Assembly: GCF_000143415.4 (NCBI RefSeq)
Contig: NW_003314287.1
Location: 642,203 to 706,202 of the forward strand
Length of the DNA stretch: 64,000 nt
Direction: 5' to 3'
From: Selaginella moellendorffii
Lineage: Eukaryota; Plantae; Lycopodiophyta
The position numbers and the translations under genes were made by a program. This document shows, one piece after another, positions 25,582-57,215 of this stretch (the stretch's first letter is position 1; the number at the start of each line of letters is the position of its first letter). The notes under the pieces were generated by a model. It saw only the letters and a program-made list of their open reading frames with translations, was not told the origin of the DNA and made no database searches.

Positions 25582-25669
25582 GCAATACAAAGCTCTTTGA
25601 AGTCATGAGAGCCGTAGATTAAGGTCCCCTGAGACGCACTGGCTTATTCCGTGGAGTCATGCCGTGTGC

Positions 25670-26406
25670 TTATGGAGTCGCAGCGTGATGATCTTTCCCT
25701 CCTGAACGAATGAAAAGAAGAGCGTCTGCACAGAAAAGAGTGGAAAGTCTATACTGTAGCACCTGATGCCTTGCGACTGTCCTTCGGAGTTGGAGCGGGG
25801 CTGGTCTTTGGAGGAGTTGGACTTGGAGCGGGGCTGGTCTTTGGAGGAGATGGGCTTGGAGCGGGGCTGGTCTTTGGAGATGGACTCGCCTTTGGGCTTG
25901 AACTGGGACTTTCCGTGCATCCTGTTAACAGCAAAACTCTATCAAGTTCATGGTACAAATCGTGGAAGCATGAAAAGTTGGCCAGACAAACCTGGTGGGG
26001 GCGGTCCTGGCAGAAACATGAAAGAAAAATAAAACAGTTAAGCCTGAAAAACCATAGAAAAGAAAGCAGAAGTTGGTATGTATATGGCACCAAATTTACG
26101 TAAAAAGTTTCAGTACATAATCTTGCTGTTAAATTCAAGACCACGGAGCCAGCACCTGGAGCAACAAAACCAAATCAAAGGCTATAGTAGCACAAACTTG
26201 AATTCGAACTTTCACCTGCATCGATCTTGTGCTGCAGCAACAACAAGCAAAGAAAAGATGTTGGCAAGAGTCCCATAGAACACCATGTCAAATACATCAC
26301 AAGAACCTTGGTTTGCTTGACGAACACCAAACTCAGCAGCTCCATCATCCCCAAGACTGCAAACCACAAGACATGAAATCACCAACACCACAAAGACGGC
26401 CTTCAT
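25670..26406 (-). CDS. Secreted Cys/Pro-rich micro-exon gene, copy 1 (exon-3 donor deleted; possibly a pseudogene)
   Basis: Signal peptide [19 protein letters not shown], micro-exons, 3 KTSP repeats; deletion near 26140 removes the normal donor and the third Cys. Confidence 0.5.
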
Positions 26407-26846
26407 CTTGTAGAGACACTGGATGGCTGGCTGAGAAGCAATGTAGGAGGTAAATGCGAATGCATATGCAGGGCCCTGAAGGGGGAATTTATTTTGAACC
26501 AAGGCTAGCAAAACAAAGCCCCTGGAATCACAATGTACGGGGCAGAATCTCAGTTTTTGTTATTCCAAATCATAGCTGGTGGTAACATTCTGCCAGGTTT
26601 ACGAACAAGGTGATATGACCTAAAGCGCATATGATAGTTGTCTTTTTTCCCAAAGAATTTAGAACGTGAAAGAGAATTGTCTGAGGTGATTCCAAATCTT
26701 AGCTGGGTGGCAACAATAGACACAAGTTCTGCCAGGTTTACGAACAAGGTGATATGACCTAAAGCGCATACAGCACAGGGACGTGATAGTTGTCTTGCCT
26801 ATTTTATAGACAATGATTTGGATGTGCAAAGAAACCGATCCAGAGG

Positions 26847-28000
26847 CTAAATTGCAAGAAATTTGTTTAAGCGAAGTACTGCAGCTCGTTTGCCACGAGT
26901 CACATCTCCATGGAGCCTGCAAGCGCTCATCAGAGTTGTCCACCGCATCCGGAAGAAATGGCATGGACTGGATGAGATTCTCGGCCTCCTCCGCTTAGCC
27001 CGCCCAAGCAGATCAACCATGCACCTGTAGTGATGGGTCGATCCCAAAGTCTGATTGAATCGACAGGAAGTGTTCCCTAGCATCAGTGATCTTCCCCGCG
27101 TGGCTGCAACCACTCAGGATTGCGATAAAAGTGATCTCGTCCGGTGAAATCCCTTCGAGATTCATGGCCTGAAACGCATTAATCGCATCTTGCATATGCG
27201 TTTCTGGCAAGTACTGCGATCAAGGCCGTCCACGACCGCTGGTCTTTCCATGGCATATTTTCGAACACTTCATGGGCGCAGCTTACATTACCATTTACGG
27301 AAAATGCAACCATCATTGTAGTATTGTGCACCAGAATTCTGTCAAATATACTCTTCTCTTGCACAAGACACCCATTAAGGGCATAGACTGAGATCATAGC
27401 GTTCCAGGACACTACGTCGTGCAAGGGCATTCGATCGAAGGCTTGAATTGATTCGTCAAATTCACCACAATCGCCATAGCCAGTCAGAAGAACACACCAT
27501 GCAGGGTGATCGCGGAAAGGCATCGAGAGGAACATTCTCTTCGCATCTGTTTGATACCCATCCTATGCACGGGCTGACATTACGGTGTTCCATGCCACGA
27601 CATTCCAACTCGGCATTCTATCCAGGCCTCTTTTGCTTTGAAGGTTTGCATTGCAGTAACAAGTCCACCAGCTAGAGCATTCCAGGATCTTTCTGCTCCA
27701 CAAGAGAAAACAATCTCCACATCTCCTCGAGATTCCCAACTCCGGCATTGCAGAAATCATGCAAGTCCAAGCTGCAACATTGGTCTCGGGCGTCGACTCA
27801 AAGATTATCTTTACCTCAGTTACCCGACCCACATGCGCCAAGACCTGTATCATTGCGTTACTAGACAGAATATCCCACTGTGGCATCCGATCAAAGAGTA
27901 TCATTTCTTCCTGAGTATCCTCTGTTTGGGCATATACTGTAATCATAGTATTCCAAGTAATGACATTCTTTTGAGGCATGTTAAGAAACACAGAAGTAGA
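26847..28000 (-). pseudogene. PLS-class PPR (E-type) pseudogene
   Basis: [56 protein letters not shown] distributed over different frames. Confidence 0.85.
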
Positions 28001-28049
28001 TTCATTTAAGCAACAAGTAGATGCTCAAGATGACTAGGGCCTTTGACCC

Positions 28050-28660
28050 TTGCAATTCAATACTTGAAGATCAAAGCAAGAATGAAAGTGAAGGCTAAAA
28101 TCCCATTCCACATGGTTGAGGTAAATATTAGTGTTGTATACTTAAGCTCTTGTAAGTAGCATAGCTCGCTTACACAAACTCTGTAAAATTGGATATAAAT
28201 TTTCCTCTCTAAATTGTTTCAAATGTTAAAACATTGACAAAACTTACCTAAAGACAGCAAGGAAGAATGTTGCAAACAACATAAGAAAATTGAGACTTAG
28301 TTTCCTCTTCTTGAAAGAAAACAAAAAATAATCCACTAGTGAGTAATATGAACTTAGCAATGCAGAAAGAATGTCACAAACTTTAAATAATATGTCACAA
28401 ACTTTTCCACAAAGAAGGAGAGAAATATCAAAACCAGGAAGCAATTTTTATATATGAATCATAGAACTACCCTTGCCAAAGCAAGACTTTGTAGCTTTCA
28501 AAACCTGCTTGGGCAACAATGAGAACCATATGAAATCTAAGCCGGGAAGAAGGTAATGAGATGGTTGCTCATCGTCAAATAATCTAATATTATTAGCATT
28601 AGCTGTGGGTGGAAGAGGTAATGGAATATATATCTCTTCTAAATCAATAGCAACATCAGA
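28050..28660 (-). pseudogene. WAT1/UMAMIT 5' fragment (first three exons)
   Basis: Degraded copy of ~22825-23435 (IYIPLPLPPTA..., ATFFLAVF). Confidence 0.8.
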
Positions 28661-28839
28661 ACAAGTACAACTCAAATCGCTATATATAACCTTAGAAATT
28701 TACAAAGGTATAAGAAAAGAAAAGATGGGCAAACAGAGCACATAAATCAGGTGTTGGAATTGAAAGTAACATCAAAACAAGTACAACTCAAATCACTATA
28801 TATAATCTCATAAATTAACAAAAGTATAAGAAAAGAAAA

Positions 28840-29225
28840 GATGGGCAGATAAAGCACATGAATTAATTATTGGAAAATGTGTTGAGGTCTTTTGTGGGAA
28901 ATTTGATTCAATAAAGAGTATGGGAGAAATACTTGCCTTTGCTTTAGTTTACTCACAATAATGCTTATCAATTGTTTATTAACATGTTTCCATTCATGGT
29001 AATGTATAGCTATGAGCATAAGTTTTTTGTGAATTTGAATTTGGCTTTAGTTTGGGTGTTTTATGTTTGTGATTTTCTGGAGGATATGCAAAACAAGTTT
29101 GAGTTGGCAAAGTTGAACATGAGGCAAGTTCAAAATAAAGACAAAAGTTAGGCTCATGAGTATTGTCATCATTAAGAGTACAAAGTTGGTGACAAAGTTT
29201 TCCTGAAATTGTTAGATGCACAAAA
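28840..29225 (+). mobile_element. Ty3/gypsy integrase C-terminal fragment
   Basis: DGQIKHMN*LLENVLRSFV...VWEKYLPLL*FTHNN...; same family as the minus-strand element at 43.6 kb. Confidence 0.65.
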
Positions 29226-29279
29226 GTCTCTGAAAGGAGGTGGTAGTGATTGATCAGACATTAAAGAAGGTTCATTTAG

Positions 29280-29915
29280 ATTGCAAGAGGTACCAAGATC
29301 ATACTGATGTTCCAAGTGCTTAATGAAATTTTATAAAATCCAGAAGATAAAACACAGGATTGTCTCCAAGAAAAATGTGTCCTCATAATGTTGCAGCATT
29401 TCCTCTGATCAGGTCTCGTTGATCTATGCCAACTTGACACTGGACGACATTCTACTCAAGAACGAGCTCGACAAACTTGCTGAAAACATCCAAACTTCAA
29501 GGTCCCGTTTGAGACTATCAGACTTCTCGTGTTTCCAAGGAAAACCGATGCATGTTTACAGGTTTTCTATGTTGCCGATAAGCCAATGCGATAAGGATCC
29601 GGCTTCATCACGAAAGACCTGGTGAAGGGACTACCACCTCCTTCAGACGGCAATCTCATCATGGTTTGAAGCTCATTCGCTGCTTGTTACTTAGTTCCCC
29701 ATTGACACCATTTCCAACAGGTGTGCAGGTCTCCAGCCCTCATGAACCACATCTCCGGCGATAAAGCACCAGACAAATGACAAGGACAAGTAACCATTTT
29801 ACAGAGATATCTATTCCAACGCGCGAGCTTCCCTGATTCCCCTCTTCCTTCTCAACAGTTGACAGGTCTCTTGAAGAGCATGGGTTACACCGAAGACCAA
29901 GTGTACAAGTTCTAG
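29280..29915 (+). pseudogene. Cytochrome b5 reductase 3' fragment B
   Basis: IYANLTLDDILLKNELDKL with frameshifts. Confidence 0.8.
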
Positions 29916-30029
29916 GCATTCTTGGACAAGAACAACACAATACAATAAAAAACTCTTTAAAGTCATGAGAGCCGTAGATTAAGGTCCCCTGAGACGCACT
30001 GGCTTATTCCGTGGAGTCATGCCGTGTGC

Positions 30030-30841
30030 TTATGGAGTCGCAGCGTGATGATCTTTCCCACCTGAACGAATGAAAAGAAGAGCGTTTGCACAGAAAAGAG
30101 TGGAAAGTCTATACTGTAGCACCTGATGCCTTGGGACTGTCCTTCGGAGTTGGGCTTGGAGCGGGGCTGGTCTTTGGAGGAGATGGGCTTGGAGCGGGGC
30201 TGGTCTTTGGAGATGGGCTTGGTGTTGGGCTTGAACTGGGACTTTCCGTGCATCCTGTTAACAGCAAAACTCTATCAAGTTCATGGTACAAATCATGGAA
30301 GCATGAAAAGTTGCCTAGACAAACCTGGTGGGGGCGGTCCTGACAGAAACATGAAAGAAAAATAAAACAGTTAGGCATGAAAAACCATAGACAAACCTGG
30401 CGGTCCTGACAGAAACATGAAACAAAAATAAAACAGTTAGGCATGAAGAACCATAGAAAAGAAAGCACAAGGTTGTATGTATATGGCACCTGCTTCAAAT
30501 TTACGTAAAAAGTTTCAGTACGTGATATTAATCTTGCTGTTAAATTCAAGAGTTTCACCTGGGCATGGCGGCGCACCACGGAGCCAGCACCTGGAACAAC
30601 AAAACCAAATCGAAGGCTATAGTAGCATAAACTTGAATTCAAACTTTCACCTGCATCGATCTTGTGCTGCAGCAACAACAAGCAAAGAAAAGATGTTGGC
30701 AAGAGTCCCATAGAAGACCATGTGAAATGCATCAAAAGAACCTTGGTTTCCTTGACGAACAACAAACTCAGCAGCTCCATCATCTCCGAGACTGCAAACC
30801 ACAAGACATGAAATCACCAATGCCACAAAGACGGCCTTCAT
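30030..30841 (-). CDS. Secreted Cys/Pro-rich micro-exon gene, copy 2 (extra 9-nt exon)
   Basis: Signal peptide; exons of 100/16/32/9/15 nt, repeat exon with 2 KTSP, last exon GGKDHHAATP*; frame continuous. Confidence 0.7.
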
Positions 30842-31099
30842 CTTGTAGAGACACTGGATGGCTACCTGAGAGGCAATGCAGGAGGTGAAATGCGAATGCA
30901 TATGCAGTGCCTCGAAGCTGGAATTTATTTTGAACCAAGGCTAGCAAACAAAGTCACTAGAATGACAATATACCAGAGAACGTGAATGAGAATTGTCTGA
31001 GGTGAAGTTGAGGTGAAGTGTCCCTTTCGAATCTTAGCTGGGTGGCGACTCCTTTATGACATTCATTGCCAACAAGGTGATATGACCTAAGGCCCACAA

Positions 31100-31705
31100 A
31101 GAAGCTGGCAGCATTCTGCAAACCAGTTTCTTTGATCCAGAGACTAAATTGCAAGAGATATGTTTAAGCGAAGTATGTGCTCTGCAGCTCACTTGCCAGA
31201 CCAAGCAGATCAACCATGCACCTGTAGTGATCCACAATTGGGTCGATCACAAAGTCTGATTGGATCAACAGGAAGTGTTCTCGAGGATAAATGATCTTCC
31301 CCACGTGGCTGCAACCGCTCAGGATTGCAATAAAAGTGATCTCGTCCGGTGAAATCCCCTCGAGATTCATTGCCTGAAACGCATTAATCGCATCTTGCAT
31401 ATGCCCTTTCCTGGCAAGTACTGCGATCAAGGCCGTCGACGACCATTGGTCTTTCCATGGCATATTTTCGAACACTTCACGGGCATAGCTTAAATTACCA
31501 TTTACTAAAATGCAACCATCATTGTAGTGAACGATGAAAGATTGTGTTCCAGAATTCTGTTAAATATTCTCTTCTCTTGCACAAGGCACCTATTAAGGGC
31601 ATAGACTGAGATCGAAACGTTCCATGACAGTATGTCGTGCAAGGGCATTAGATTGAAGGCTTGAATTGATTCGACAAATTCATCACAATCGCCATAGCCA
31701 GTCAA
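31100..31705 (-). pseudogene. PPR fragment
   Basis: MPWKDQWSSTALI...[16 protein letters not shown], truncated at both ends. Confidence 0.8.
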
Positions 31706-31789
31706 TATAACAGAAGAAAAACAACTTCACGCAAGAGAAACTCTTTCAAGATTAAACTACACTGTAGATTAGCATGATTTCGAAAATGT

Positions 31790-31990
31790 TAATTAGATAC
31801 ATTATCCTTATGAGAAATCATCCCAGTTTCAACAAGGTGAGGAACTTCTGCTGCTAGCCAAGGCCCAAGACCCAAGAAAAGCGCATGTGAAACACCAAAT
31901 CTAGGACTGGCAAAGAGATACAAATTAAAATAAATCAAACAATGAAAAATCAATTTGATGCGCTAACGTTCTTTGTATGATTTCGTCACA
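31790..31990 (-). pseudogene. UFC1 last exon fused to a scrap of reductase intron
   Basis: [24 protein letters not shown]; same junction sequence as at ~24370. Confidence 0.75.
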
Positions 31991-32102
31991 AGGAAATGCC
32001 GTTATTTGATACAAGAACAACACAATACAATACAAAGCTCTTTAAAGTCATGAGAGTTCCCCTGAGACGCACTGGCTTATTCCGTGGAGTCATGCCGTGT
32101 GC

Positions 32103-33001
32103 TTATGGAGTCGCAGCGTGATGATCTTTCCCTCCTGAACGAATGAAAAGAAGAGCGTTTGCACAGAAAAGAGTGGAAAGTCTATACTGTAGCACCTGAT
32201 GCCTTGGGAGTGGCCTTCGGAGTTGGGCTTGGAGCGGGGCTGGTCTTTGGAGGAGTTGGACTTGGAGCGGGGCTGGTCTTTGGAGGAGATGGGCTTGCAG
32301 CGGGGCTGGTCTTTGGAGGAGTTGGACTTGGAGCGGGGCTGGTCTTTGGAGGAGTTGGACTTGGAGCGGGGCTGGTCTTTGGAGGAGATGGGCTTGCAGC
32401 GGGGCTGGTCTTTGGAGGAGTTGGACTTGTAGCGGGGCTGGTCTTTGGAGATGGGCTTGGTGTTGGGCTTGAACTGGGACTTTCTGTGCATCCTGTTAAC
32501 AGCAAAACTCCATCAAGTTCATGGTACAAATCGTGGAAGCATGAAAAGTTGCCTAGACAAACCTGGTGGGGGCGGTCCTGACAGAAACATGAAAGAAAAA
32601 TAAAACAGTTAGGCATGAAAAACCATAGACAAACCTGGTGGGGGCGGTCCTGACAGAAACATGAAAGAAAAATAAAACAGTTAAGCCTGAGAAAAGAAGT
32701 TAAATTCAAGAGTTTCACCTGGGCATGGCGGCGCACCACGGAGCCAGCACCTGGAGCAACAAAACCAAATCGAAGGCTATAGTAGCACAAACTTGAATTC
32801 AAACTTTCACCTGCATCGATCTTGTGCTGCAGCAACAACAAGCAAAGAAAAGATGTTGGCAAGAGTCCCATAGAAGACCATGTCAAATGCATCAAAAGAA
32901 CCTTGGTTTGCTTGACGAACAACAAACTCAACAGCTCCATCATCCCCGAGAATGCAAACCACAAGACATGAAATCACCAATGCCACAAAGACGGCCTTCA
33001 T
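32103..33001 (-). CDS. Secreted Cys/Pro-rich micro-exon gene, copy 3 (two 15-nt exons)
   Basis: Signal peptide; exons of 100/16/32/15/15 nt, 7 KTSP repeats, last exon GGKDHHAATP*. Confidence 0.7.
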
Positions 33002-33349
33002 CTTGTAGAGACACTGGATGGCTGGCTGAGAGGCAATGCAGGAGGTGAAATGCGAATGCATATGCAGTGCCTCGAAGCTGGAATTTATTTCGAACCAAGG
33101 CTAGCAAACAAAGTCACTAGAACGACAATATTCCGGAGAACGTGAATGAGAATTGTCTGAGGTGAAGTTGAGGTGAAGTGTCCCTTTCAAATCTTAGCTG
33201 GGTAGCAACTCCATACAATATAGACACAAGTTCCAGCAAAATTGACAAAATGTCATAAATGTCAGATAGCACGTTCATGACTTTCATTAAAGCCCACAAA
33301 GAAGCTGGCAGCAAAGGGACGTGATAGTTGTCTTGCCTTCTGCAAACCA

Positions 33350-34065
33350 GTTTCTTTGATGCAGAGACTAAATTGCAAGAGATATATATGTTTAAGCGAA
33401 GTATGTGCTCTGCAGCTTGCTTGCCATGAGCCACATGGAACTTCCGTTTTTAGATATCTTCTTACTCCAATTTTGGAGAGCCTGCAAGCGCTCAACAGAG
33501 TTGTCCATGCCACCGCATCTGGAAGAAATGGCATGGATTGTATGAGATTCTCGGCCTCCTCCATCCGCTTAGCCCGCCCAAGCAGATCAACCATGCACCT
33601 GTAGTGATGGGTCGATCCCAAAGTCTGATTGGATCGACAGGAAGTGTTCTCGAGCATCAGTGATCTTCCCCGCGTGGCTGCAACCGCTCAGGATTGCAAT
33701 AAAAGCGATCTCGTCCGGTGAAATCCCTTCGAGATTCATGGCCTGAAACGCATTAATCGCATCTTGCATATGCCCGTTCCTGGCAAGTACTGCGATCAAG
33801 GCCGTCCACGACCGCTGGTCTTTCCATGGCATATTTTCAAATACTTCACAGGCGCAGCTTACATGATCATTTACGGAAAATGCAACCATCATTGTAGTGA
33901 ACGATGAAAGATTGTGTTCCAGAATTCTGTCAAATATTCTCTTCTCTTGCACAAGGCACCTATTAGACTGAGATCAAAACGTTCCACGACACTATGTCGT
34001 GCAAGGGCATTAGATTGAAGGCTTGAATTGATTCGACAAATTCATCACAATCGCCATAGCCAGTC
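33350..34065 (-). pseudogene. PPR fragment
   Basis: PPR motifs and E-domain start ([18 protein letters not shown]); frameshifted and 5'-truncated. Confidence 0.8.
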
Positions 34066-35015: not shown

Positions 35016-36726
35016 ATGGCGCTGGCGCTGCGCTCTCGATCGGCTCTTCGAAAGGCTGCCCCGGCATTTTCATTCCACAGCGGAGCTGAGGCCGCCGGAT
35101 CTGGCGCCGATCGGCGGACTGGAGCCGCCGCCGCGGCGACTGGAGCGGCGATTTTGGCAGCAGTGGCGACGATCTACTCGACCTGGAAGAGCGAGGTGAG
35201 ATCTTTTCTTGTAGCATGCTGCTGCTCATCTTTTTCCTGTGGATTCTGTAAAGACCGCTCGTAGCGACGCTGGGGATTTTGGTTCGTGCTTTGCTTTTTG
35301 CTCGAAAGTTCTAAGTTTTGGTCGTGGTTTGCTCACATTGTCCGTCCAGCATTGGATCCGAACGAATGGCGAAAGTTTCGACTCTTAGAAGCGAAGCCTG
35401 TGACTCACAACACGAGACGTTACAGGCAAGAGGAAAGAAAAAATGGAAAACAAGACGATGCGCTAACGTTCTTTGTATGATTTCGTTGTCCAGGTTTGCC
35501 TTGGATGACGATGCGCAACTGGGTCTTAACGTTGCTTCCTGCCTCTTGACAAAGTAACGGAGCTCCCAAACTTCATGAGGAAGATACGTGAATTTTTCTT
35601 TGCTTTGCAGGGCTGCTATGGGTACGAAAAAGGATGGGAAGCCAAATGTGATCATCAGACCGTATGTAGAATTGTCTTACGCTTGGAATCACTGTAACTC
35701 GTGCTTCGTGCTGACAGATATACGCCCATAAGTGATCCAGACGTTCGTGGTCACTTCGATTTACTTGTGAAGGTATTGTGTTCTTTGTTTTCAGCATTTG
35801 CGTGCTTTCTCAGCTAACGATGAAGAAAACATTTTCTTTGTAGACATACCCCCAAGGAAAAATGAGCAAATATTTTGCTGCTCTTCGGCCCGGAGACACT
35901 TTGGAAATGAAAGGGTACGTGTATTTTACTACATACTTTTTTCCGTCTGTAGTTTTACAAGGAAGATCCACAGTCCTATTCCCAAGCTCCCATACAGCGC
36001 CAACATGAAAGAACGTATCGGCATGGTATATCTTTGAGTTCTCTGCGTCACTTTACTGTCGTTTAGATTGCAGGAGGTACCGGGATCACACCGATGTTTC
36101 AAGTGCTTAACGAGATCTTAAAAAATCCAGAAGATAAAACACAGGTTTGTCTCCAGGAAAAACGTGTCCTCGTAATGTTTCTGCGGCGTTTCCTCCGATC
36201 AGGTCTCGTTGATCTATGCCAACTTGACACCGGACGACATTCTACTCAAGAACGAGCTCGACAAACTAGCTGAAAAGCATCCAAACTTCAAGGTCCTGTT
36301 TGAAGACTATCAGACTTCCACTCTGGTGTTTCCAAGGAAAACTGACGCATGTTTACAGGTTTTCTATGTTGTCGATAAGCCAACGCGTTACTGGGGAGGA
36401 GGATCCGGCTTCATCACGAAAGACATCCTGGTGAAGGGACTACCACCTCCTTCGGACGGCAATCTCATCATGGTTTGAAGCTTATTTGCTGCTCGTTGTT
36501 ACTTAGTTCCCATTGACACAATTTCCAACAGGTGTGCGGGCCTCCAGGCCTCATGAACCACATCTCCGGCGATAAAGCACCAGACAAATCACAAGGACAA
36601 GTAAGCATTTTACAGAGATATCTATTCCAACGGGCGAGCTTCCCTGATTCCACTCTTCCTTCTCAACAGTTGACAGGTCTCTTGAAGAGCATGGGTTACA
36701 CCGAAGACCAAGTGTACAAGTTCTAG
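35016..36726 (+). CDS. NADH-cytochrome b5 reductase, mitochondrial CBR2/MCR1-like, intact
   Basis: Presequence-like MALALRSRSALRK plus a hydrophobic stretch; RPYTPISDPD..GHFDLLVK, IAGGTGITPMFQ, VCGPPG, GYTEDQVYKF*. Confidence 0.9.
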
Positions 36727-36864
36727 GCATTCTTGGACAAGAACAACACAATACAATACAAAGCTCTTTAAAGTCATGAGAGCCGTAGATCAAGGTCCCC
36801 TGAGACGCACTGGCTTATTCCGTGGAGTCATGCCGTGTGCTTATGGAGTCGCAGCGTGATGATC

Positions 36865-37776
36865 TTACCCTCCTGAACGAATGAAAAGAAGAGCGTTTGC
36901 ACAGAAAAGAGTGGAAAGTCTATACTGTAGCACCTGATGCCTTGGGACTGGCCTTCGGAGTTGGATTTGGAGCGGGGCTGGTCCGTGGAGGTGATGGGCT
37001 TGGAGCGGGGCTGGTCTTTGGAGGAGTTGGACTTGGAGTGGGGGTGGTCTTTGAAGGTGATGGGCTTGGAGCGGGGCTGGTCTTTGGAAGAGTTGGAATT
37101 GGAACGGGACTGGTCTTTGGAGGAGTTGGACTTGGAGCGGGGCTGGTCTTTGGAGAAGGGCTTGGTGTTGGGCTCGTCTTTGGAGATGGGCTGGGTGTTG
37201 GGCTGGTCTTTGGAGATGGACTCGCCTTTGGGCTTGAACTGGGACTTTCCGTGCATCCTGTTAACAGCAAAACTCTATCAAGTTCATGGTACAAATCGTG
37301 GAAGCATGAAGAGTTGGCCAGACAAACCTGGTGGGGGCGGTCCTGACAGAAACATGAAACAAAAATAAAACAGTGAAGCCTGAAAAACCATAGAAAAGAA
37401 AGCAGAAGTTGGTATGTATATGGCACCTGCTTCAAATTTACGTAAAAAGTTTCAGTACGTGATATTATCTTGCTGTTAATTCAAGAGTTTCACCTGGGCA
37501 TGGCGGCGTACCACGGAGCCAGCACCTGGAGCAGCAAAACCAAATCAAAGGCTATAGTAGCACAAACTTGAATTTGAACTTTCACCTGCATCGATCTTGT
37601 ACTGCAACAACAAGAAGCAAAGAAAAGATGTTGGCAAGAGTCCCATAGAAGACCATGTCAAATGCATCAAAAGAACCTTGGTTTGCTTGACGAACAACAA
37701 ACTCAGCAGCTCCATCATCCCCGAGACTGCAAACCACAAGACATGAAATCACCAACGCCACAAAGACGGCCTTCAT
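36865..37776 (-). CDS. Secreted Cys/Pro-rich micro-exon gene, copy 4
   Basis: Exons 37776-37677, 37601-37586, 37525-37494, (37429-37427?), 37342-37328, 37257-36934, 36872-36865; all GT-AG; 8 repeat units; tail shortened to GG*. Confidence 0.72.
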
Positions 37777-38264
37777 CTTGTAGAGACACTGGATGGCTGG
37801 CTGAGAGGCAATGCAGGGGGTAAAATGCGAATGCATATGCAGGGCCCTGAAGGGGGAATTTATTTCGAACTACCGGGCAGAATCTCTTTTTTTTTTTCCC
37901 AAGGAATTGACAAGGGAGCCCTTCCAAATCTTAGCTGGGTGGTGACAATAGACACAAGTTTTGCCAGGTTTACGAACAAAGTGATATGACCTAAAGCGCA
38001 TGTGATAGTTGTCGTTTTTCCCAAAGAATTGACGAAAGAGAATTGTCTGAGGTGATTCCAAATCTTAGGTGGGTGGCAACAATAGACAAGGTATCCATAC
38101 TACAATCTGACAATGGATACCTTCGTCCATGAATACCTTACAAGACGAAGCAAGTTCTGCCAGGTTTACGAACAAGGTGATATGACCTAAAGCGCATACA
38201 GTGATAGTTGTCTTGCCTATTTTATAGACAATGATTTGGATGTGCAAAGAAACCGGTCCAGAGA

Positions 38265-39415
38265 CTAAATTGCAAGAAATTTTAAGCGAAGTATGTGCTC
38301 TGCAGCTCGTTTGCCACGAGCCACATCTCGATGGAGCCTGCAAGCGCTCATCAGAGTTGTCCATGCCACCACGTCTGGAAGAAATGGCATGGACTGGATG
38401 AGATTCTCGGTCTCCTCCAGCCGCTTAGCCCGCCCAAGCAGATCAACCATGCACCTGTAGTGATGGGTCGATCCCAAAGTCTGATTGGATCGACAGGAAG
38501 TGTTCTCGAGCATCAGTGATCTTCCCCGCGTGGCTGCAACCGCTCAGGATTGCGATAAAAGTGATCTCGTCCGGTGAAATCCCTTCGAGATTCATGGCCT
38601 GAAACGCATTAATCACATCTTGCATTCGGCCGTTTCTGGCAAGCACTGCGATCAAGGCCGTCCACGACCGCTGGTCTTTCCATGGCATATTTTCGAACAC
38701 TTCAGCTTACATTACCATTTACGGAAAATGCAACCATCATTGTAGTATTGTGCACCAGAATTCTGTCAAATATACTCTTCTCTTGCACAAGACACCCATT
38801 AAGGGCATAGACTGAGATCATAGCGTTCCAGGCCACTACGTCGTGCAAGGGCATTCGATCGAAGGCTTGAATTGATTCGTCAAATTCACCACAATCGCCA
38901 TAGCCAGTCAGAAGAACACACCATGCAGGGTGATCGCGGAAAGGCATCGAGAGGAACATTCTCTTCGCATCTGTTTGATACCCATCCTATGCACAGGCTG
39001 ACATTACGGTGTTCCATGCCACGACATTCCAACTCGGCATTCTATCCAGGCCTCTTTTGCTTTGAAGGTTTGCGTTGCAGTAATAAGTCCACCAGCTAGA
39101 GCATTCAAGGATCTTTCTGCTCCACAAGAGAAAACAATCTCCGAGATTTCCAACTCCGGCATTTGCAGAAATCATGCAAGTCCAAGTTACAACATTGGTC
39201 TCGGGCGTCAACTCAAAGATTATCTTTGACTCAGTTACCTGACCCACATGCGCCAAGACCTGTATCATTGCGTTACTAGACAGAATATCCCACTGTGGCA
39301 TCCGATCAAAGAGTATCATTTCTTCCTGAGTATCCCCTGTTTAGGCATATACTGTAATCATAGTATTCCAAGTAATGACATGCTTTTGAGGCATGTTAAG
39401 AAACACAGAAGTAGA
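38265..39415 (-). pseudogene. PLS-class PPR pseudogene
   Basis: Homologous to 26847-28000, several frameshifts. Confidence 0.85.
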
Positions 39416-39469
39416 TTCATTTAAGCAAAAATTAGATGCTCAAGATGACTAGGGCTTTTGACCCTTGCA

Positions 39470-40100
39470 ATTCAATACCTGAAGATCAAAGCAAGAATGA
39501 AAGTGAAGGCTGAAATCCTATTCTACATGGTTGAGGTAAATATTGGTGTTGTATACTTAAGCCCTTGTAAGTAGCATAGCTTACTTACATAAACTCTGTA
39601 AGATTGAATATAGTTCTTCCTCTCTAAATTGTTTCAAATGTTAAAACATTGACAAAACTTACTTGAACACAGCGAGGAAGATTGTTGCAAATAACATAGG
39701 AAAAATGAGATTTTGTTTTCTCTTCTTGGAAGAAAACAAAAGAAATCCACTAGTGAGTAATATGAACTTAGCAATGCAGAAAGAATGTCACAAACTTTGA
39801 GTAATATGAACTTAGCAATGCAGAAAGAATGTCACAAACTTTTCCACAAAGGAAGAGAGAAATCTCAAAACCAGGAAGCCAAGGCAATTTTTATACATGA
39901 ATCATAGAACTACCCTTGCCAAAGCAAGACTTTGTAGCTTGCAAAACCTGCTTGGGCAACAATGAGAACCACATGAAATCTAAGCCGGGAAGAAGGTAAT
40001 GAGATTGGTTGCTCATCATCAAATAATCTAATATTATTAGCAGTAGCTATAGGTGGAAGAGGTAATGGAACATATATCTCTTCTAAATCAATAGCAACAT
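39470..40100 (-). pseudogene. WAT1/UMAMIT 5' fragment
   Basis: EIYVPLPLPP...SSRLRFHVVLIVAQAGFA, degraded. Confidence 0.8.
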
Positions 40101-40279
40101 TAGAACAAGTACAACTCAAATATATAACCTCAGAGATTTATAAAGGTATAAGAAAAGGAAAGATGGGCAAATAGAGCACATGAATCAGGTGTTAGTATCA
40201 ATAGCAACATCAAAATAAATACAACTCAAATCATTATATATAATCTCATAGATTGACAAAAGTATAAGAAAAGAAAAGA

Positions 40280-40600
40280 TAGCTAAACACAACATATGAA
40301 TTAACTATTGGAAAATGTGTTGAGGTCTTTTGTGGGAAACATGATTTAACAAAGAGTATAGAAAAAGTACTTGCCTTTGTTTTAGTTTACTCACAACTTT
40401 TGTGAGTTTTAGTTTGGCTTTAGTTTGGGTGCTTTATGCTTGTGATTTTTTAGAGGATATGCAAGACAAACTTAAATGGGCAAAGTTGAACATGAGGCAA
40501 GTTCAAAATAAAGACAAAAAATTGGCTAATGAACATTATCATCATCAAGAGTACAAAATTAGTGACAAAGTTTTCCTTAAACTGTCGGATGCACAATGTT
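40280..40600 (+). mobile_element. Ty3/gypsy integrase C-terminal fragment
   Basis: LEDMQDKLKWAKLNMRQVQ...YKISDKVFLKL; homologous to 28840-29225. Confidence 0.6.
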
Positions 40601-40658
40601 CTTTGAAAGGAGGTGGTAGTGATCAATCAGACATTGAAGAAGGTATAGATATTGTTCA

Positions 40659-41284
40659 GATTGCAGGAGGTACCAAGATCACACTGATGTTCCAAGTGCT
40701 TAATGAGATCTTATAAAATCCAGAAGATAAAACACAGGATTGTCTCCAGGAAAAATGTGTCCTCATAATGTTTCTGCAGCATTTCCTCTGATCAGGTCTC
40801 GTTGATCTATGCCAACTTGACACTGGACGACATTCTACTCAAGAACGAGCTCAACAAACTTGCTGAAAACATCCAAACTTCAAGGTCCTGTTTGAGACTA
40901 TCAGACTTCTTGTGTTTCCAAGGAAAACTGATGCATGTTTACAGGTTTTCTATGTTGCCGATAAGCCAATGCGACCGCCTTCATCACGAAAGACCTGGTG
41001 AAGGGACTACCACCTCCTTCAGACGGCAATCTCATCATGGTTTGAAGCTCATTCGCTGCTCGTTACTTAGTTCCCCATTGACACCATTTCCAACAGGTGT
41101 GCGGGCCTCCAGCCCTCATGAGCCACATCTCTGGCGATAAAGCACCAGACAAATCACAAGGACAAGTAACCATTTTACAGAGATATCTATTCCAACACGC
41201 GAACTTCCCTGATTCCACTCTTCTTTCTCAACAGTTGACAGGTCTCTTGAAGAGCATGGGTTAGACCAAGTGTACAAGTTCTAG
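40659..41284 (+). pseudogene. Cytochrome b5 reductase 3' fragment D
   Basis: IAGGTKITLMFQVLNEIL*, frameshifts. Confidence 0.8.
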
Positions 41285-41386
41285 GCATTCTTGGACAAGA
41301 ACAACACAATACAATACAAAGCTCTTTAAAGTCATGAGAGGTCCCCTGAGACGCACTGGCTTATTCCGTGGAGTCATGCCGTGTGC

Positions 41387-42148
41387 TTATGGAGTCGCAG
41401 CGTGATGATCTTTCCCTCCTGAACGAATGAAAAGAAGAGCGTTTGCACAGAAAAGAGTGGAAAGTCTATACTGTAGCACCTGATGCCTTGGGAGTGGCCT
41501 TCGGAGTTGGGCTTGGAGCGGGGCTGGTCTTTGGAGGAGATGTGCTTGGAGCGGGGGTGGTCTTTGGAGGAGATGGGCTTGGAGCGGGGCTGGTCTTTGG
41601 AGATGGGCTTGGTGTTGGGCTTGAACTGGGACTTTCCGTGCATCCTGTTAACAGCAAAACTCTATCAAGTTCATGGTTCAAGTTTGCCCAGACAAACCTG
41701 GTGGGGGTGGTCCTGACAGAAACATGAAACAAAAATAAAACAGTTAAGCCTGAAAAACCATAGAAAAGAAAGCAGAAGTTGGTATGTATATGGCACCTGC
41801 TTCAAATTTACGTAAAAAGTTTCAGTACGTGATATTAATCTTGCTGTTAAATTCAAGAGTTTCACCTGGGCATGGCGGCGTACCACGGAGCCAGCACCTG
41901 GAGCAGCAAAACCAAATCAAAGGCTATAGTAGCACAAACTTGAATTTGAACTTTCACCTGCATCGATCTTGTACTGCAACAACAAGAAGCAAAGAAAAGA
42001 TGTTGGCAAGAGTCCCATAGAAGACCATGTCAAATGCATCAAAAGAACCTTGGTTTGCTTGACGAACAACAAACTCAGCAGCTCCATCATCCCCGAGACT
42101 GCAAACCACAAGACATGAAATCACCAACGCCACAAAGACGGCCTTCAT
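41387..42148 (-). CDS. Secreted Cys/Pro-rich micro-exon gene, copy 5
   Basis: Signal peptide, exons of 100/16/32/15 nt, 3 repeat units, GGKDHHAATP*. Confidence 0.7.
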
Positions 42149-42459
42149 CTTGTAGAGACACTGGATGGCTGGCTGAGAGGCAATGTAGGAGGTAAATGCG
42201 AATGCATATGCAGTGCCCCGAAGCCGGAATTTTATTTCGAACCAAGGCTAACAAACAAAGCCACTGGAATCACAATGTACCGGGCAGAATCTCAGTTTTT
42301 GTTATTTATCCAAAGAATTGACAAGGGAGAACGTGAAAGAGAATTGTTTGAGGTGGAGTGTCCCTTCCAAATCTTAGCTGGGTGGCAACAATAGACACAA
42401 GTTCTGCCAGGTGTACGAACAAGGTGATATGACCTAAAGCGCATAATAGTTGTATAGCC

Positions 42460-42897
42460 TATTTTATAGGATGGCAAAGAAACCGATCCAGAGACTAAAT
42501 TGCAAGAAATTTGTTAAAGCGAAGTATGTGCTCTGCAGTCGTTTGCCACGAGTCACATCCAACAGAGTTGTCCATGCCACCGCATCTGGAAGAAATGGCA
42601 TGGACTGGATGAGATTCTCGGCCTCCTCCAGCCGCTTAGCCCGCCCAAGCAGATCAACCATGCACCTGTAGTGATGGGTCGATCCCAAAGTCTGATTGGA
42701 TCGACAGGAAGTGTTCTCGAGCATCAGTGATCTTCCCCGCGTGGCTGCAACCGCTCAGGATTGCGATAAAAGTGATCTCGTCCGGTGAAATCCCTTCGAG
42801 ATTCATGGCCTGAAACGCATTAATCACATCTTGCATTAGGCCGTTTCTGGCAAGTACTGCGATCAAGGCCGTCCACGACCACTAGTCTTTCCATGGC
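42460..42897 (-). pseudogene. PPR 3' fragment truncated by a transposon
   Basis: [29 protein letters not shown]. Confidence 0.8.
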
Positions 42898-43616
42898 GAA
42901 ATGCTTATCTATTGCCATGTTTACATCCAGTGAAAGGGATGTGATATGGGATAAACTTTTAACTTATAGGAGAATAAGAACTCGATTGATGCTAAGTCTG
43001 ATCGCATTAGAAAAGGACTTGTATGTTGGTGAGAGTATTATAGTAATGAAATTCCAGCACTTTAGAAGTTGGCCATTCGAGTTCTAAGTCAAGCATGCTC
43101 GTCATCCTTAGTGAAAAGATTGTTTAGCACTTTCAAGGATATGTCTTCAAAGAAGAAAAATAAACTTACTATGGACAAGACAGAGGTTGTTAATCTGTAA
43201 TTTGTCATAGATTGTGACTATGACAAATTTGTGAGCTATAATGTAAGAAGACAAACTTAAGTCAGGAGAGGAAGAGGAAGAAGAAGAAGAAAATGGAGAT
43301 GATATCAAAGATTATGAGGTTGAAGATAACAATGATTTGTTTGACAAAGAAAGCTCATTTCTTCCTAGTAAAGACAACAATTAAAACTACTAAACTTGCT
43401 TAGTTGTTTGTAAATTAGTTATTTAGTCTATATAGTTTGTTGGGTGGATTTTTGAGTAGTTTATTTATAATAAAAAGTAGCATATTCCTAGAATTAAAAA
43501 GAGAATATTCTTATAATATCCACTAGAATATTCATGAGCTATTGATCGTGTTCTATAGTCAGGTTCCTGAAATCTAAAGCTCATGTTTGTGTTCTATATT
43601 CGTGTTCATAAGTATG
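42898..43616 (+). mobile_element. hAT transposon 3' remnant (dimerisation domain, acidic tail, putative terminus)
   Basis: PAL*KLAIRVLSQACSSS...RLFSTFKDMSSKKKNKL, Glu/Asp-rich tail, repeated CGTGTTC/TGTTC subterminal motifs. Confidence 0.65.
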
Positions 43617-46600
43617 ATATCAATTATAAACATTATTGTGAGCAAAATGGAGCAAAAGCAAATACTTCTCCCATACTTTTTGTCGAGTCAAGTTTCTTAT
43701 AAAAAACCTCAATACATCTTCTAACAATTGATTCATGCACTTTATCTGCCCATCTAAATGTGAATGCTCACCACTACTCATGTTCAACTTAATTTTTAAC
43801 TTCTCAAATATCATTGCCAAAACTTAAACATGAACTTAGGATCTTGATCAATCACAATATACAATCTACAACTACCAAATAATATTATTTCCTTGAAAAG
43901 TCTTGGGCAAACTAGTGGTAAATTATATTGAGATGTTATCCCAATCATTTTCAAGTATACATAGAGGATAATAGAGGCCAACAAACTTATGATGATCAAC
44001 TTTGACCACTTGCCAAGTCAAACAACCATATACATAGTTTTCAACATCTAACTTTATCCTAGGCAAAACAAAATGCCTCTTCACTAATACATACGTCCTT
44101 AGTACCCCTAGATGCCTAGCATTTATCAACTAAAATCTTTTTAATGAGTTTATCAATATGAGGAATCACTAAATGTCCCTTATTTACCAAGATTTCATTT
44201 CATATCTTGAATGATATAACCTTATCACCCTTTAAATACATAGAGGTATCCCTCAATAAAACCTTCATATTAATATTAGTGATGAAGAAGTTGAAGTCAA
44301 TAAACTCTTTAAACTCATCTAAAAGATTGCTAGATAACTTCATGAATGAGATAAAATTCATTATCTTGAATAATGCATTAGCCATTTTATTGTCATCACC
44401 AAACTTGTACCAGATTTTCACAAATATGTCCTGTAAGAGCTCTTGCCAACCAGTAAAGTGGTCTCAAAGATCCTTTTAATGACTAAAATATTGGAGAGAT
44501 TGATGGTTTGGATCTACATAGAAGTCTGATCCATATAGATAATATTGCCATTCATTCACAATAGCAATCATAGAATACAATGCCTTATCTCGAGTAAGCC
44601 AATTTTATTGTGTGGCATCAAACTTAGATCATGCATTATCAAAGGTATAAACCAATCAATCATGACTTGGATCTTTGTGAGATCATCTTTTATACCATAC
44701 ACTGAAATTGCCTGAGATATCTAATTTCCTCCAAGAAAAACTCATACTTGGATAACTTTGAGTATAGCTTGTTATCACTCAAAAGATGTAAAACACTTCG
44801 CACATGCATCTCATGTTCTACTGTAGAGTTGAACACTAGGATATTAAAGTAGTCGATCACAAATTTCCCCAAATAAGGTTGTAAAACTTAATTTATCAAC
44901 CTTTGAAAAGTTGTAAGAGCATTTATCAAACCAAATGGATTTGATAATACCCTTGCTTCAAATCAATCTTTATAAAATATTGAGCACCATAAAGACAATT
45001 GAGCAAATCATCAATATGAAGTATATTCTTTCACTGTTCTATCATTTAATCCCTTAACCGTTCTAGTTCATATAGAAAAGCCATGTACTTTTTCTTTTTG
45101 ACCATCACCATTGAAGCAGCGTAAAGAGACTTGCTTATCCATAACCACCTCTTTTGAAGGTACTCAGAAAGTTGCCTATTGATTTCATCTTCAAAAGGAC
45201 TAGGGAGAGTCAATTTTTGGTGATAAGGAGTAACTCCAAGAGCTAAGTCAATTTCATGCTAAGTTAGATGGGGCAAACCATTAGGCAATTCATCTGGAAA
45301 TACATCATGGAACTCCTTTTGAATGCAATTCATACAAGCCCTATGCCTACAAATGTACTTTAAATCAGAGTCTTAGATCGAGTACGAGATCGAGTCCAAG
45401 ACCGAGTCTGAGATCGAGTCCAAGACCAACTCTGAGACTGAGTTCGAGATAGAGTCCAGGATCGAGTCCGAGGCCAACTCCGAGACCGAGTCCAAGACCA
45501 ACTCTGAGACTGAGTTCGAGATAGAGTCCGGGATTGAGTCCGAGGCCAACTCCGAGACCGAGTTCAAGGCCAAGTTCGAGACCAAGTTTGAGATAGAGTC
45601 CGAGATCCAAGATCGGGTCCGAGACCGAGTCCGAGGTCCAGTCCGAAGTCGAGTCCGAGATCGAGTCTGAGGTCAAGTCCGAAATCGAGTCCGAAGTTGG
45701 GTCCGAGATTGAGTCTGAGATCGAGTCCGAGACCGAGTCCGAGTACTAATATAGGTCGAGGGGTGAAAGCCTAAAGCATGTGTCTCCCGGGGGGGGGGGG
45801 CTACAGGGGGTTCCAAAAATATAGTAGGGATAGTGAGATCCAAGAACCAATCTTGAAGGAACTCTCTAGTAGTGCTTCCAAACTGACTTGAGGTTGAGAT
45901 TGGGACCGAGGGGCTTTGGGTGGGAATGAGCATGGACTTGGGTGGTGCCAGAGGGGCCACCCAAGGAAGTGCTTAAAAGCAACTCCCACTCCTGGAAGGG
46001 AAATCTACTGTAATGCTCCCGGCTCATGTGGAGTGGTGCCCCACTTGAGTACCTTGTGGCTCATTGGTCCTCACCCTTCCTAAGGGCTTGGGTCTTCCCT
46101 TTGGGATGGAAGTGGGGGGGTAAAGGTACCCATCCTGGGCAATTAGGCCATAGTGTTTTGCCCCGGTGTCCTGAAGCAAGTGGTGCACCCGAGGCTTGGG
46201 ATTTAAAGGGTCCTATGATTAAATCTTGTTATACCAAGGGATGTTAAGAACTTTGAGGCTTGGTGTGCTTGGTTGCTTGTGCTTGCGGGGAGTATAGCCG
46301 AACCTTAAGTCCAGTCTAACTTGGGGAGGGGGATTAGGAGAGATTTAGGAATCCATGGATGGATACCTAACACTCCATTGCTTGTGCAGTGAGTAGTTGA
46401 AACCAAGTAGGACCAAGTAGAAGCTAGTACAATATACGAGAATCTTGGCAAGGGAACTTAGCTAAAAGCCAAGGCAGTGTTGGGCGGATAGACAAGGTAG
46501 GTTGGCAAATTGGAAAGGAAAACTTTGTGGCTTACAACTTCCTCACCATGTGACCATATCTTTAGTCACTACACAAGAGGATTGCTCCTCTTCCTTTCCA

Positions 46601-49487: not shown

Positions 49488-49529
49488 TACTTTAGTAATA
49501 AATTTAATTTTAAAAATAGTAGACTACAA

Positions 49530-49880
49530 CACCTAACATTATCCTTATGAATAATCATCCCAATTTCATGAGGAACTTCAGCTACTAGCCACAAACAAAG
49601 CACATTTGCAACACCAAATCTAGGACTGGCATAGAGCGAATTAAAACAAATCAAACAATAATGAAAAATCAGTTTTAAAAGCTTGAAATGGATTGTCAAA
49701 CAAATCTTTCCACCCCTATACAAGAGAGAAGAAGGTAAGAAATTTTCCTTGATAATGAGCTAGAGATTGAGCGTCTCTACCTTCCCGTCCAGTTCCAGGA
49801 GCTCTAGCTCTGGAGCGGTGGTGGGGTAAGTCACGGGGATCTCGAACTGCAAATCAAACTCGTATGTGAACGTACCAGCA
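49530..49880 (-). pseudogene. UFC1 pseudogene
   Basis: [28 protein letters not shown] with deletions; exon 1 missing. Confidence 0.85.
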
Positions 49881-51493: not shown

Positions 51494-51631
51494 GCATTCT
51501 TGGACAAGAACAACACAATACAATACAAAGCTCTTTAAAGTCATGAGAGCCGTAGATCAAGGTCCCCTGAGACGCACTGGCTTATTCCGTGGAGTCATGC
51601 CGTGTGCTTATGGAGTCGCAGCGTGATGATC

Positions 51632-52545
51632 TTACCCTCCTGAACGAATGAAAAGAAGAGCGTTTGCACAGAAAAGAGTGGAAAGTCTATACTGTAGCAC
51701 CTGATGCCTTGGGACTGGCCTTCGGAGTTGGATTTGGAGCGGGGCTGGTCCGTGGAGGTGATGGGCTTGGAGCGGGGCTGGTCTTTGGAGGAGTTGGACT
51801 TGGAGTGGGGGTGGTCTTTGAAGGTGATGGGCTTGGAGCGGGGCTGGTCTTTGGAAGAGTTGGAATTGGAACGGGACTGGTCTTTGGAGGAGTTGGACTT
51901 GGAGCGGGGCTGGTCTTTGGAGAAGGGCTTGGTGTTGGGCTCGTCTTTGGAGATGGGCTGGGTGTTGGGCTGGTCTTTGGAGATGGACTCGCCTTTGGGC
52001 TTGAACTGGGACTTTCCGTGCATCCTGTTAACAGCAAAACTCTATCAAGTTCATGGTACAAATCGTGGAAGCATGAAGAGTTGGCCAGACAAACCTGGTG
52101 GGGGCGGTCCTGACAGAAACATGAAACAAAAATAAAACAGTGAAGCCTGAAAAACCATAGAAAAGAAAGCAGAAGTTGGTATGTATATGGCACCTGCTTC
52201 AAATTTACGTAAAAAGTTTCAGTACGTGATATTAATCTTGCTGTTAAATTCAAGAGTTTCACCTGGGCATGGCGGCGTACCACGGAGCCAGCACCTGGAG
52301 CAGCAAAACCAAATCAAAGGCTATAGTAGCACAAACTTGAATTTGAACTTTCACCTGCATCGATCTTGTACTGCAACAACAAGAAGCAAAGAAAAGATGT
52401 TGGCAAGAGTCCCATAGAAGACCATGTCAAATGCATCAAAAGAACCTTGGTTTGCTTGACGAACAACAAACTCAGCAGCTCCATCATCCCCGAGACTGCA
52501 AACCACAAGACATGAAATCACCAACGCCACAAAGACGGCCTTCAT
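51632..52545 (-). CDS. Secreted Cys/Pro-rich micro-exon gene, copy 6 (near-identical to copy 4)
   Basis: Same exon structure and 8 repeat units as copy 4. Confidence 0.7.
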
Positions 52546-56053: not shown

Positions 56054-56155
56054 GCATTCTTGGACAAGAACAACACAATACAATACAAAGCTCTTTAAAG
56101 TCATGAGAGGTCCCCTGAGACGCACTGGCTTATTCCGTGGAGTCATGCCGTGTGC

Positions 56156-57215
56156 TTATGGAGTCGCAGCGTGATGATCTTTCCCTCCTGAACGAATGAA
56201 AAGAAGAGCGTTTGCACAGAAAAGAGTGGAAAGTCTATACTGTAGCACCTGATGCCTTGGGACTGGCCTTCGGAGTTGGGCTTGGAGCGGGGCTGGTCTT
56301 TGGAGGAGATGGGCTTGGAGCGGGGGTGGTCTTTGGAGCAGATGGGCTTGGAGCGGGGCTGGTCTTTGGAGATGGGCTTGGTGTTGGGCTTGAACTGGGA
56401 CTTTCCGTGCATCCTGTTAACAGCAAAACTCTATCAAGTTCATGGTACAAATCGTGGAAGCATGAAAAGTTGGCCAGACAAACCTGGTGGGGATGGTCCT
56501 GGCAGAAACATGAAACAAAAATAAAACAGTTAAGCCTGAAAAACCATAGAAAAGAAAGCAACTACCTCTTCCAAATCAAAAAGGGAAGGGATTTACCGTC
56601 AACTAGCATTGTAGCTCCCATCACTATGCCAGCCCTGACCAAGGAAAAGGAAGAGATGCACCTTGAAGCATCTTGCCAACTGCTATATTTGATCCTGCCC
56701 TCGCCCCTGCCAAGAATAAACAAGGTTAATATGCATCAAATGCCCTGCTCACCACTATCCTATAGCAGTGTCCAGCATTGCCCAAGTATCATGCTGCTGC
56801 AATGGGAAACTTAACTTGCTTTTTAGCATTGCCCTAGCACAGAAGTTGGTATGTATATGGCACCTGCTTCAAATTTACGTAAAAAGTTTCAGTACGTGAT
56901 ATTAATCTTGCTGTTAAATTCAAGAGTTTCACCTGGGCATCTCGACGTACCACGGAGCCAACACCTGGAGCAGCAAAACCAAATCAAAGGCTATAGTAGC
57001 ACAAACTTGAATTTGAACTTTCACCTGCATCGATCTTGTACTGCAACAACAAGAAGCAAAGAAAAGATGTTGGCAAGAGTCCCATAGAACACCATGTCAA
57101 ATGCATCAAAAGAACCTTGGTTTGCTTGACGAACAACAAACTCAGCAGCTCCATCATCCCCGAGACTGCAAACCACAAGACATGAAATCACGAACGCCAC
57201 AAAGACGGCCTTCAT
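56156..57215 (-). CDS. Secreted Cys/Pro-rich micro-exon gene, copy 7 (~280-bp intronic insertion)
   Basis: Signal peptide, exon 3 CWLRGTSRCP, 15-nt exon GPSPP, 3 repeat units, GGKDHHAATP*. Confidence 0.68.

Follow-up and report, generated by a model that had tools for sequence, protein, structure and literature searches.

How can a gene lengthen one defined loop of its product without a shift in reading frame? The question is raised by a 64,000-nucleotide stretch of the Selaginella moellendorffii genome (contig NW_003314287.1, positions 642,203 to 706,202; hereafter, the window), which carries on its minus strand seven tandem copies (c1 to c7) of one small orphan gene. The intact copies have a common exon plan in which every splice site is of the GT..AG type, and the predicted mature protein contains four Cys residues in the arrangement C-x-C-x7-C-loop-C, the greater part of the Cys3-Cys4 loop being supplied by a micro-exon (Table 1). 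Five copies (c1, c4, c5, c6, and c7) contain a single micro-exon, which reads GPSPP in c7; the loop of c4, c5, and c6 is CP-GPPPP-GC, with seven residues between Cys3 and Cys4. In c2 and c3, two micro-exons lie in tandem. We consider it probable, although well short of certain, that a single 72-bp duplication gave rise to both pairs, that both exons of each pair are spliced into the mRNA, and that the outcome is a longer loop in a secreted hydroxyproline-rich glycoprotein (HRGP).

Tandem micro-exons in two sister genes

The two micro-exons of c3 and the downstream micro-exon of c2 are the same 15-nt sequence (GACCGCCCCCACCAG, read directly on the minus strand), and the upstream micro-exon of c2 is a 9-nt sequence (GACCGCCAG). 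Direct reading placed all four exons exactly where the preliminary description had put them, and with the sequences, acceptor tracts, and GTTTGT donors given there. Each exon lies directly between ...tttctgtcag and gtttgt, in the order tgtttctgtcag, exon, gtttgtct. The exon starts are 72 bp apart in c3, as described earlier, and 66 bp apart in c2; since the first spacing includes a 15-nt exon and the second a 9-nt exon, the intron between the paired exons measures 57 nt in both genes. The 21-mer that spans exon and donor was counted eight times in the window but not once in 100 shuffles, a repetition well beyond chance. A repeat search returned the same segments as family D11, a 68-nt repeat with spacings of 66 and 72, and the c3 units are 96 to 97% identical to the reference copy of that family.

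Exon 1 ends in phase 1, exon 2 in phase 2, and exon 3 in phase 1, so that the 15-nt and 9-nt exons are all symmetric (phase 1-1). The exon phases bear out the earlier proposal that the loop changes to GPP plus GPPPP or to GPPPP plus GPPPP without a frameshift: the predicted loops are CP-GPP-GPPPP-GC in c2 and CP-GPPPP-GPPPP-GC in c3. Because the exons are symmetric, skipping of a micro-exon would shorten the loop and leave the frame intact. The paired exons have the attributes of a tandem exon duplication, i.e., they are adjacent and of common origin, each has its own acceptor and donor, and the phase is kept; they also have those of plant coding micro-exons, being internal, at most 15 nt long, and bounded by canonical splice sites. 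The large exon downstream opens with GATGCACAG in c3 and with GATGCACGG in the other copies.

Nine units were aligned to compare their junctions. The junction that joins ...CCAG gtttgtc to tatggttttt... is common to c2 and c3, and the duplicated segment takes in, besides the exon, the 50 nt before it and the 7 nt after it. The ancestral breakpoints lie between ...ttttc and tatgg... on the upstream side and between ...gtttgtc and t(a/g)gg... on the downstream side, with TC/TA(.)GG microhomology; short microhomology of this kind at the breakpoints would be typical of slippage. Within the segment lie a candidate branch point (CTAAC), at a distance of 31 nt from the acceptor, and a tract with 56% T, together with the AG, exon, and donor. 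The duplication would in this manner have copied a complete splicing unit, from the candidate branch point and T-rich tract through the AG acceptor and the exon to the GTTTGT donor.

The two genes are sisters, with 97.6% identity from the promoter-proximal region through exon 3 and a tree support of 0.975, and their downstream units differ at one position. Because the junction is common to both sister genes, one duplication before their separation is indicated; it would have been a single 72-bp tandem event in the common ancestor of c2 and c3, a Selaginella-specific gene for a secreted protein. The upstream exon of c2 corresponds to the 15-nt exon minus 6 nt and would have arisen by a later in-frame deletion. 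The other later changes are an 84-nt and a 9-nt deletion in intron 3 of c3 and a few substitutions. The locus had previously been described as an exon duplication in progress. The duplication itself is real and frame-neutral, but "in progress" does not hold, because the junction is common to the two closely identical sisters and the units have since diverged; the phrase overstates the case for a duplication that, judged from the assembled sequence, is young but fixed in two paralogues.

Predicted splicing of the paired exons

Both exons should be spliceable by intron definition, because the 57-nt intron between them falls within the 53- to 75-nt range of the family, whose other short introns measure 53, 60, 61, 69, 70, and 75 nt. 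In c3, this intron has the branch point candidate and the T content given above, and its retention would introduce an in-frame TAA. In most c3 mRNA, the encoded sequence would be C-P-GPPPP-GPPPP-G-C, which places 12 residues rather than 7 between Cys3 and Cys4, and c2 mRNA would encode C-P-GPP-GPPPP-G-C, with 10 residues; mRNAs that include one exon could arise as a minor product. In a disulfide-bonded N-terminal knob, the duplication would lengthen a rigid polyproline spacer. Coding micro-exons of 9 nt are well established in plants, and RNA-seq in S. moellendorffii has revealed 270 micro-exons of no more than 15 nt, only 17% of which were annotated in v1.0 (PMC8831610); the supplements of that paper contain no per-locus list of the Selaginella micro-exons.

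RefSeq models of the family were obtained by two word searches, in which single exons and database proteins served as queries; joined translations were computed on the window only. The large exon of c3 retrieved XP_024538196 (P0001; 150 amino acids, isoform X2, one GPPPP) and XP_024538195 (P0002; 155 amino acids, isoform X1, two GPPPP), and the N-terminal part of P0002 added P0003, P0004, and P0005. P0001 to P0003 are located on another contig (1,796,630 bp) and have the same 100/16/32/15-nt exon architecture as deduced here. P0004 matches c4 and c6 at 100% except for an alternative acceptor inside intron 3, which adds 81 nt of intron in frame; in c4 and c6, this frame stays open only because cttcactg replaces the stop-containing cttaactg or cctaactg of the other copies. 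Since P0001 to P0003 share the architecture and P0004 maps onto c4 and c6, the micro-exon model is the reference annotation's own. The partial intron retention in P0004 fits the statement that plant micro-exons are more often affected by retention of a neighbouring intron than by skipping (PMC8831610).

Several observations weigh against the joint splicing of both exons after a single duplication. The joining of the two micro-exons in c2 and c3 is itself predicted from genomic signals. The RefSeq model over c2 (P0005) is a chimera that skips the 9-nt exon: its c2 part (30793-30653) retains intron 1, and the c1 large exon to which it is joined (25922-25752) lies 4.3 kb away. P0005 contains two GPPPP units although c2 has one 15-nt exon. 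No RefSeq protein of 56 to 271 amino acids was found for c3 in the two word searches. The ancestral caggctt is present in the upstream c3 unit, whereas the other three units of c2 and c3 have catgcct; under a single origin, this distribution requires gene conversion, a back-change, or another order of events. Two GPPPP also occur in a third gene, which lies on another contig, so that a recurrent origin is conceivable. A structure predicted by AlphaFold2 from a five-sequence alignment was uninformative, with a mean predicted local distance difference test (pLDDT) score of 55 and values below 50 in the loop.

The duplicated micro-exons might instead be skipped optionally, as the preliminary description proposed, and to a substantial or regulated extent, so that each gene yields loop isoforms with one or two units. 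Such skipping is plausible, but as the principal account of c2 and c3 we regard it as rather doubtful. The exons are symmetric and their omission keeps the frame, the GTTTGT donor does not match the plant consensus strongly, and RefSeq provides a two-GPPPP isoform X1 (P0002) and a one-GPPPP isoform X2 (P0001) for a paralogue. Loop-length isoforms are thus already present in the public annotation, for the paralogue on the other contig and not for c2 or c3. The X1/X2 pair lends weak support, because short reads from one-unit paralogues, which hardly differ in exon 3, the micro-exon, and the beginning of the large exon, could mimic skipping and because RefSeq is demonstrably confused in this family, as the P0005 chimera illustrates. 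Moreover, the prevalence of retention over skipping among plant micro-exons (PMC8831610) runs counter to this account, as does the sole alternative model in the window, P0004, which is a partial intron retention.

It is unlikely that c2 and c3 are silent or decaying and that the duplication represents neutral slippage without consequence in a repeat-prone array. The array is indeed unstable, as seen from its tail repeats, the broken c1, the enlarged intron 3 of c7, and a 14.8-kb duplication, and the failure to find a RefSeq protein for c3 or transcript-derived fragments in the protein collection is consistent with silence. On the other hand, the ATG, the reading frame, every splice site, and the four Cys residues are intact in c2 and c3, and the 6-nt, 72-nt, and 84-nt insertions or deletions all spare the signals, which is weak evidence in copies so young.

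Use of only one exon of each pair, whether because the other is ignored or because the 57-nt intron is not removable once both exons are recognised, would return c3 to the ancestral protein with one GPPPP, on which the duplication would then leave no mark; we judge this improbable. The distance from donor to branch point in the 57-nt intron is approximately 25 nt, and tandem duplicated exons in animals are often mutually exclusive (Kondrashov and Koonin 2001, as cited in PMC2674458), but the family has presumed functional introns of 53 to 61 nt, and P0002 is a two-exon mRNA model for a paralogue, which speaks against mutual exclusion in that gene.

A more elaborate combination, in which the GPPPP unit was duplicated independently in the cluster of the window and in that of the other contig and its inclusion once or twice is regulated to tune the polyproline spacer in a disulfide loop of a secreted wall glycoprotein, is very improbable; if true, it would constitute a plant counterpart of the protein variation generated by schistosome micro-exon genes. 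Finally, it is scarcely credible that the micro-exon model is wrong and that the genes are read unspliced as open reading frames (ORFs) of 231 (c2) and 260 (c3) codons in the large-exon frame (30109-30804 and 32182-32964, minus strand), candidates that were rejected because the frames are broken in c4 to c7 by differences of 2 nt and 17 nt in intron length and have no signal peptide, the spliced model being conserved in all intact copies and used by RefSeq.

The gene array, its annotation, and the encoded protein

Instability marks the whole array. The copies differ in how many 33-nt tail repeats they have, so that their large exons range from 132 to 324 nt, and intron 3 of c7 is approximately 280 nt larger than the others (434 nt versus 151 to 153 nt). 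A segmental duplication of approximately 14.8 kb relates positions 36000-50700 (c4 and c5) to 50768-64000 (c6 and c7), with 99.1% identity over the first 5.8 kb and 91 to 98% beyond; it could be a very recent event or an effect of the assembly. Over the 5' part chosen for comparison (from 120 nt before the ATG to exon 3 inclusive), c6 and c4 are 99.5% identical. Splicing around the 24-nt deletion in c1 shifts the frame, so that c1 is probably a pseudogene. In a locus this prone to slippage, the micro-exon duplication is one product among several. The coordinates of the features are collected in Table 1.

Table 1. Exon plan, gene copies, duplicated micro-exons, and annotated segments of the orphan gene array (window coordinates)
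Feature	Position	Strand	Description
c3 upstream micro-exon	32635..32649	minus	15 nt, GPPPP, phase 1-1; acceptor tgtttctgtcag, donor gtttgtct; preceding intron 69 nt
c3 downstream micro-exon	32563..32577	minus	15 nt, GPPPP, identical to upstream exon; preceding intron 57 nt
c3 tandem repeat block	32555..32694	minus	two units (intron tail, exon, and 7 nt of donor): 32555-32622 and 32627-32694
c3 coding region	32103..33001	minus	predicted product of 168 amino acids; introns 57-75 nt, all GT..AG
c3 exons	33001-32902, 32826-32811, 32750-32719, 32649-32635, 32577-32563, 32492-32196, 32134-32103	minus	
c2 upstream micro-exon	30397..30405	minus	9 nt, GACCGCCAG, GPP; acceptor and donor as in the 15-nt exons
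c2 downstream micro-exon	30325..30339	minus	15 nt, GACCGCCCCCACCAG, GPPPP
c2 tandem repeat block	30317..30450	minus	66-nt and 72-nt units (30317-30384 and 30383-30450)
c2 coding region	30030..30841	minus	predicted product of 111 amino acids
c2 exons	30841-30742, 30666-30651, 30590-30559, 30405-30397, 30339-30325, 30254-30123, 30061-30030	minus	
ATG of c1 to c7	26406, 30841, 33001, 37776, 42148, 52545, 57215	minus	
Exon 1			100 nt; signal-peptide form ending (S/I)LG, then further residues; followed by 75-nt intron
Exon 2			16 nt;.QDRC; followed by 60-nt intron
Exon 3			32 nt; RCWLRG..PCP; followed by intron 3
Micro-exon			15 nt; GACCGCCCCCACCAG = GPPPP; followed by 70-nt intron (53 nt in c5)
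Large exon			132-324 nt; 33-nt repeats after a short non-repeat start; followed by 61-nt intron
Last exon			short; GGKDHHAATP
c1	25650..26406	minus	one micro-exon; 24-nt deletion (26212-26231 region; exon 3 area near 26150-26215) takes end of exon 3 (Cys3) and donor
c4	36821..37776	minus	one micro-exon; equals RefSeq P0004 except for the alternative 3' splice site of that model
c5	41367..42148	minus	one micro-exon; intron after micro-exon only 53 nt
c6	51588..52545	minus	one micro-exon; predicted protein identical to that of c4
c7	56136..57215	minus	one micro-exon, GPSPP; intron 3 of 434 nt
P0004 extra segment	37344-37424 and 52111-52191	minus	27 hydrophobic residues between Cys3 and GPPPP
P0005 chimera ("pentatricopeptide repeat-containing protein At4g16835-like")	25752-31463	minus	pentatricopeptide repeat (PPR) fragment 31463-31224, c2 exons, and c1 large exon
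Upstream ATG extensions	33002-33061, 30842-30901, 37777-37836, 52546-52605	minus	

The RefSeq product names "alpha carbonic anhydrase 8-like" and "LRR extensin-like" seem to derive from nothing more than the proline-rich tail of low complexity. Members on the other contig share the sequence TTPCP, and the cluster in the window has APPCP or TPPCP, a difference suggestive of either concerted evolution inside each cluster or the presence of two haplotype versions. When the c4 ORF spanning exon 1, intron 1, and exon 2 served as query in a word search, no short transcript-derived fragments were returned.

Intron 1 (26232-26306, 30667-30741, and 32827-32901) is 75 nt long, in frame, and stop-free in c1 to c3, and that of c4 to c7 differs by only a few bases; its retention would insert 25 residues, as in P0005. 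The stop-free frame may be due to chance, given that approximately 30% of random 25-codon stretches are stop-free. An in-frame ATG upstream of the assigned start (MHSHFT...) adds 20 residues in c2, c3, c4, and c6, and P0004 starts there; the downstream ATG is probably the true start, because a 1-nt deletion breaks the upstream frame in c1, c5, and c7. The last exon of c4 (36872-36866) and c6 (51639-51633) reads GGGTAA where the other copies have GGGAAA, so that the protein ends with ...SGG and is without KDHHAATP. PPR coding fragments lie between the copies (27179-27991, 31164-31475, and 33262-33952) as part of a 4.4-kb repeat unit and look degenerate.

With respect to the encoded protein, Pro, Ala, Ser, and Thr make up 89% of the c3 large exon, which also contains SP, AP, and TP dipeptides and periodic Lys residues. 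A signal peptide (judged by eye), a Pro/Ala/Ser/Thr content above 50%, and AP, SP, and TP glycomodules, the marks of arabinogalactan protein (AGP)-like HRGPs, are all present. This composition suggests a secreted, hydroxyproline-rich, AGP-like glycoprotein of the wall or apoplast with a small head that would be disulfide bonded. A signal for the glycosylphosphatidylinositol (GPI) anchor that classical members carry is unlikely, since the C-terminus GGKDHHAATP is not hydrophobic. A Pfam scan of P0002 returned no family even at E values up to 10, the protein atlas yielded only low-score proline-rich look-alikes, and a whole-library HMMER search with P0003 gave significant matches only to the S. 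moellendorffii family, the marginal ones being unrelated proline-rich bacterial proteins. In the libraries searched, the family is for these reasons an orphan.

Taken together, c2 and c3 represent a clean but ordinary case of gene growth by exon duplication, in which the loop would gain three (c2) or five (c3) residues. The case has no bearing on a long-standing open question. Its value lies in being a clean natural example in which a 72-bp slippage copies a complete splicing unit and adds residues without further change, and c2 exhibits a later step, the in-frame shrinkage to a 9-nt exon. The two genes also offer a simple test of how a plant spliceosome that handles very short introns deals with two identical micro-exons 57 nt apart. 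In addition, annotation errors in the family are flagged, namely the chimeric RefSeq model, the unannotated c3, and the misleading product names.

Comparison with known systems

Tandem exon duplication has long been known to lengthen proteins and to create alternative splicing (Kondrashov and Koonin 2001, as cited in PMC2674458; PMC9741552), and human tandem duplicated exon events have been described (PMC9741552). As in those cases, the exon in c2 and c3 was duplicated together with its splice signals, and the copies are of the same length and phase and are frame-neutral. Known cases are mostly ancient, from animals, and mutually exclusive, whereas the present one is young, occurs in a lycophyte orphan gene, and has a predicted splicing pattern; moreover, the c3 copies are only 15 nt long and identical. 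Because they are identical, the c3 exons can give no "substitution" isoforms but only products with one or two units.

The micro-exons of the window resemble the plant micro-exons of Yu et al. 2022 (PMC8831610) in their length (9 to 15 nt), in their T-rich flanking introns, and in the existence of an alternative model, P0004, in which the upstream intron is partly retained, as that study describes for micro-exons. According to the same study, unannotated micro-exons abound in S. moellendorffii. The study describes micro-exons that form part of known domains and have been conserved throughout the land plants, while those of the window are restricted to one species and differ in number from paralogue to paralogue.

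The micro-exon genes (MEGs) of schistosomes (bioRxiv 10.1101/2023.06.21.545858, PMC4350168) likewise form clusters that encode small secreted proteins, with a mature N-terminus derived largely from very short exons, and a symmetric exon can be skipped without a frameshift. In the window family, unlike in MEGs, symmetry is confined to the GPPPP exon (exon 2 has 16 nt and exon 3 has 32 nt), the introns are very short where those of MEGs are long, most of the coding sequence lies in the large exon, and splice-generated variation is hypothetical. The protein searches yielded no relatives outside S. moellendorffii, and the genes are not homologous to the schistosome MEGs.

In terms of protein type, the closest likeness is to AGP-like or hybrid HRGPs, with which the window protein shares a signal-like N-terminus, the tail of 89% Pro/Ala/Ser/Thr, SP, AP, and TP dipeptides, periodic Lys residues, and variable 33-nt repeats. 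It differs from them in having neither a GPI signal nor SPPPP extensin repeats, and its four-Cys N-terminus matches no Pfam family. Their mode of growth resembles collagen-type exon amplification, in which, as here, Gly- and Pro-rich units encoded by short symmetric exons are multiplied in tandem; the window genes differ in that they lack a Gly-X-Y triplet repeat, have gained a single unit, and are not homologous.

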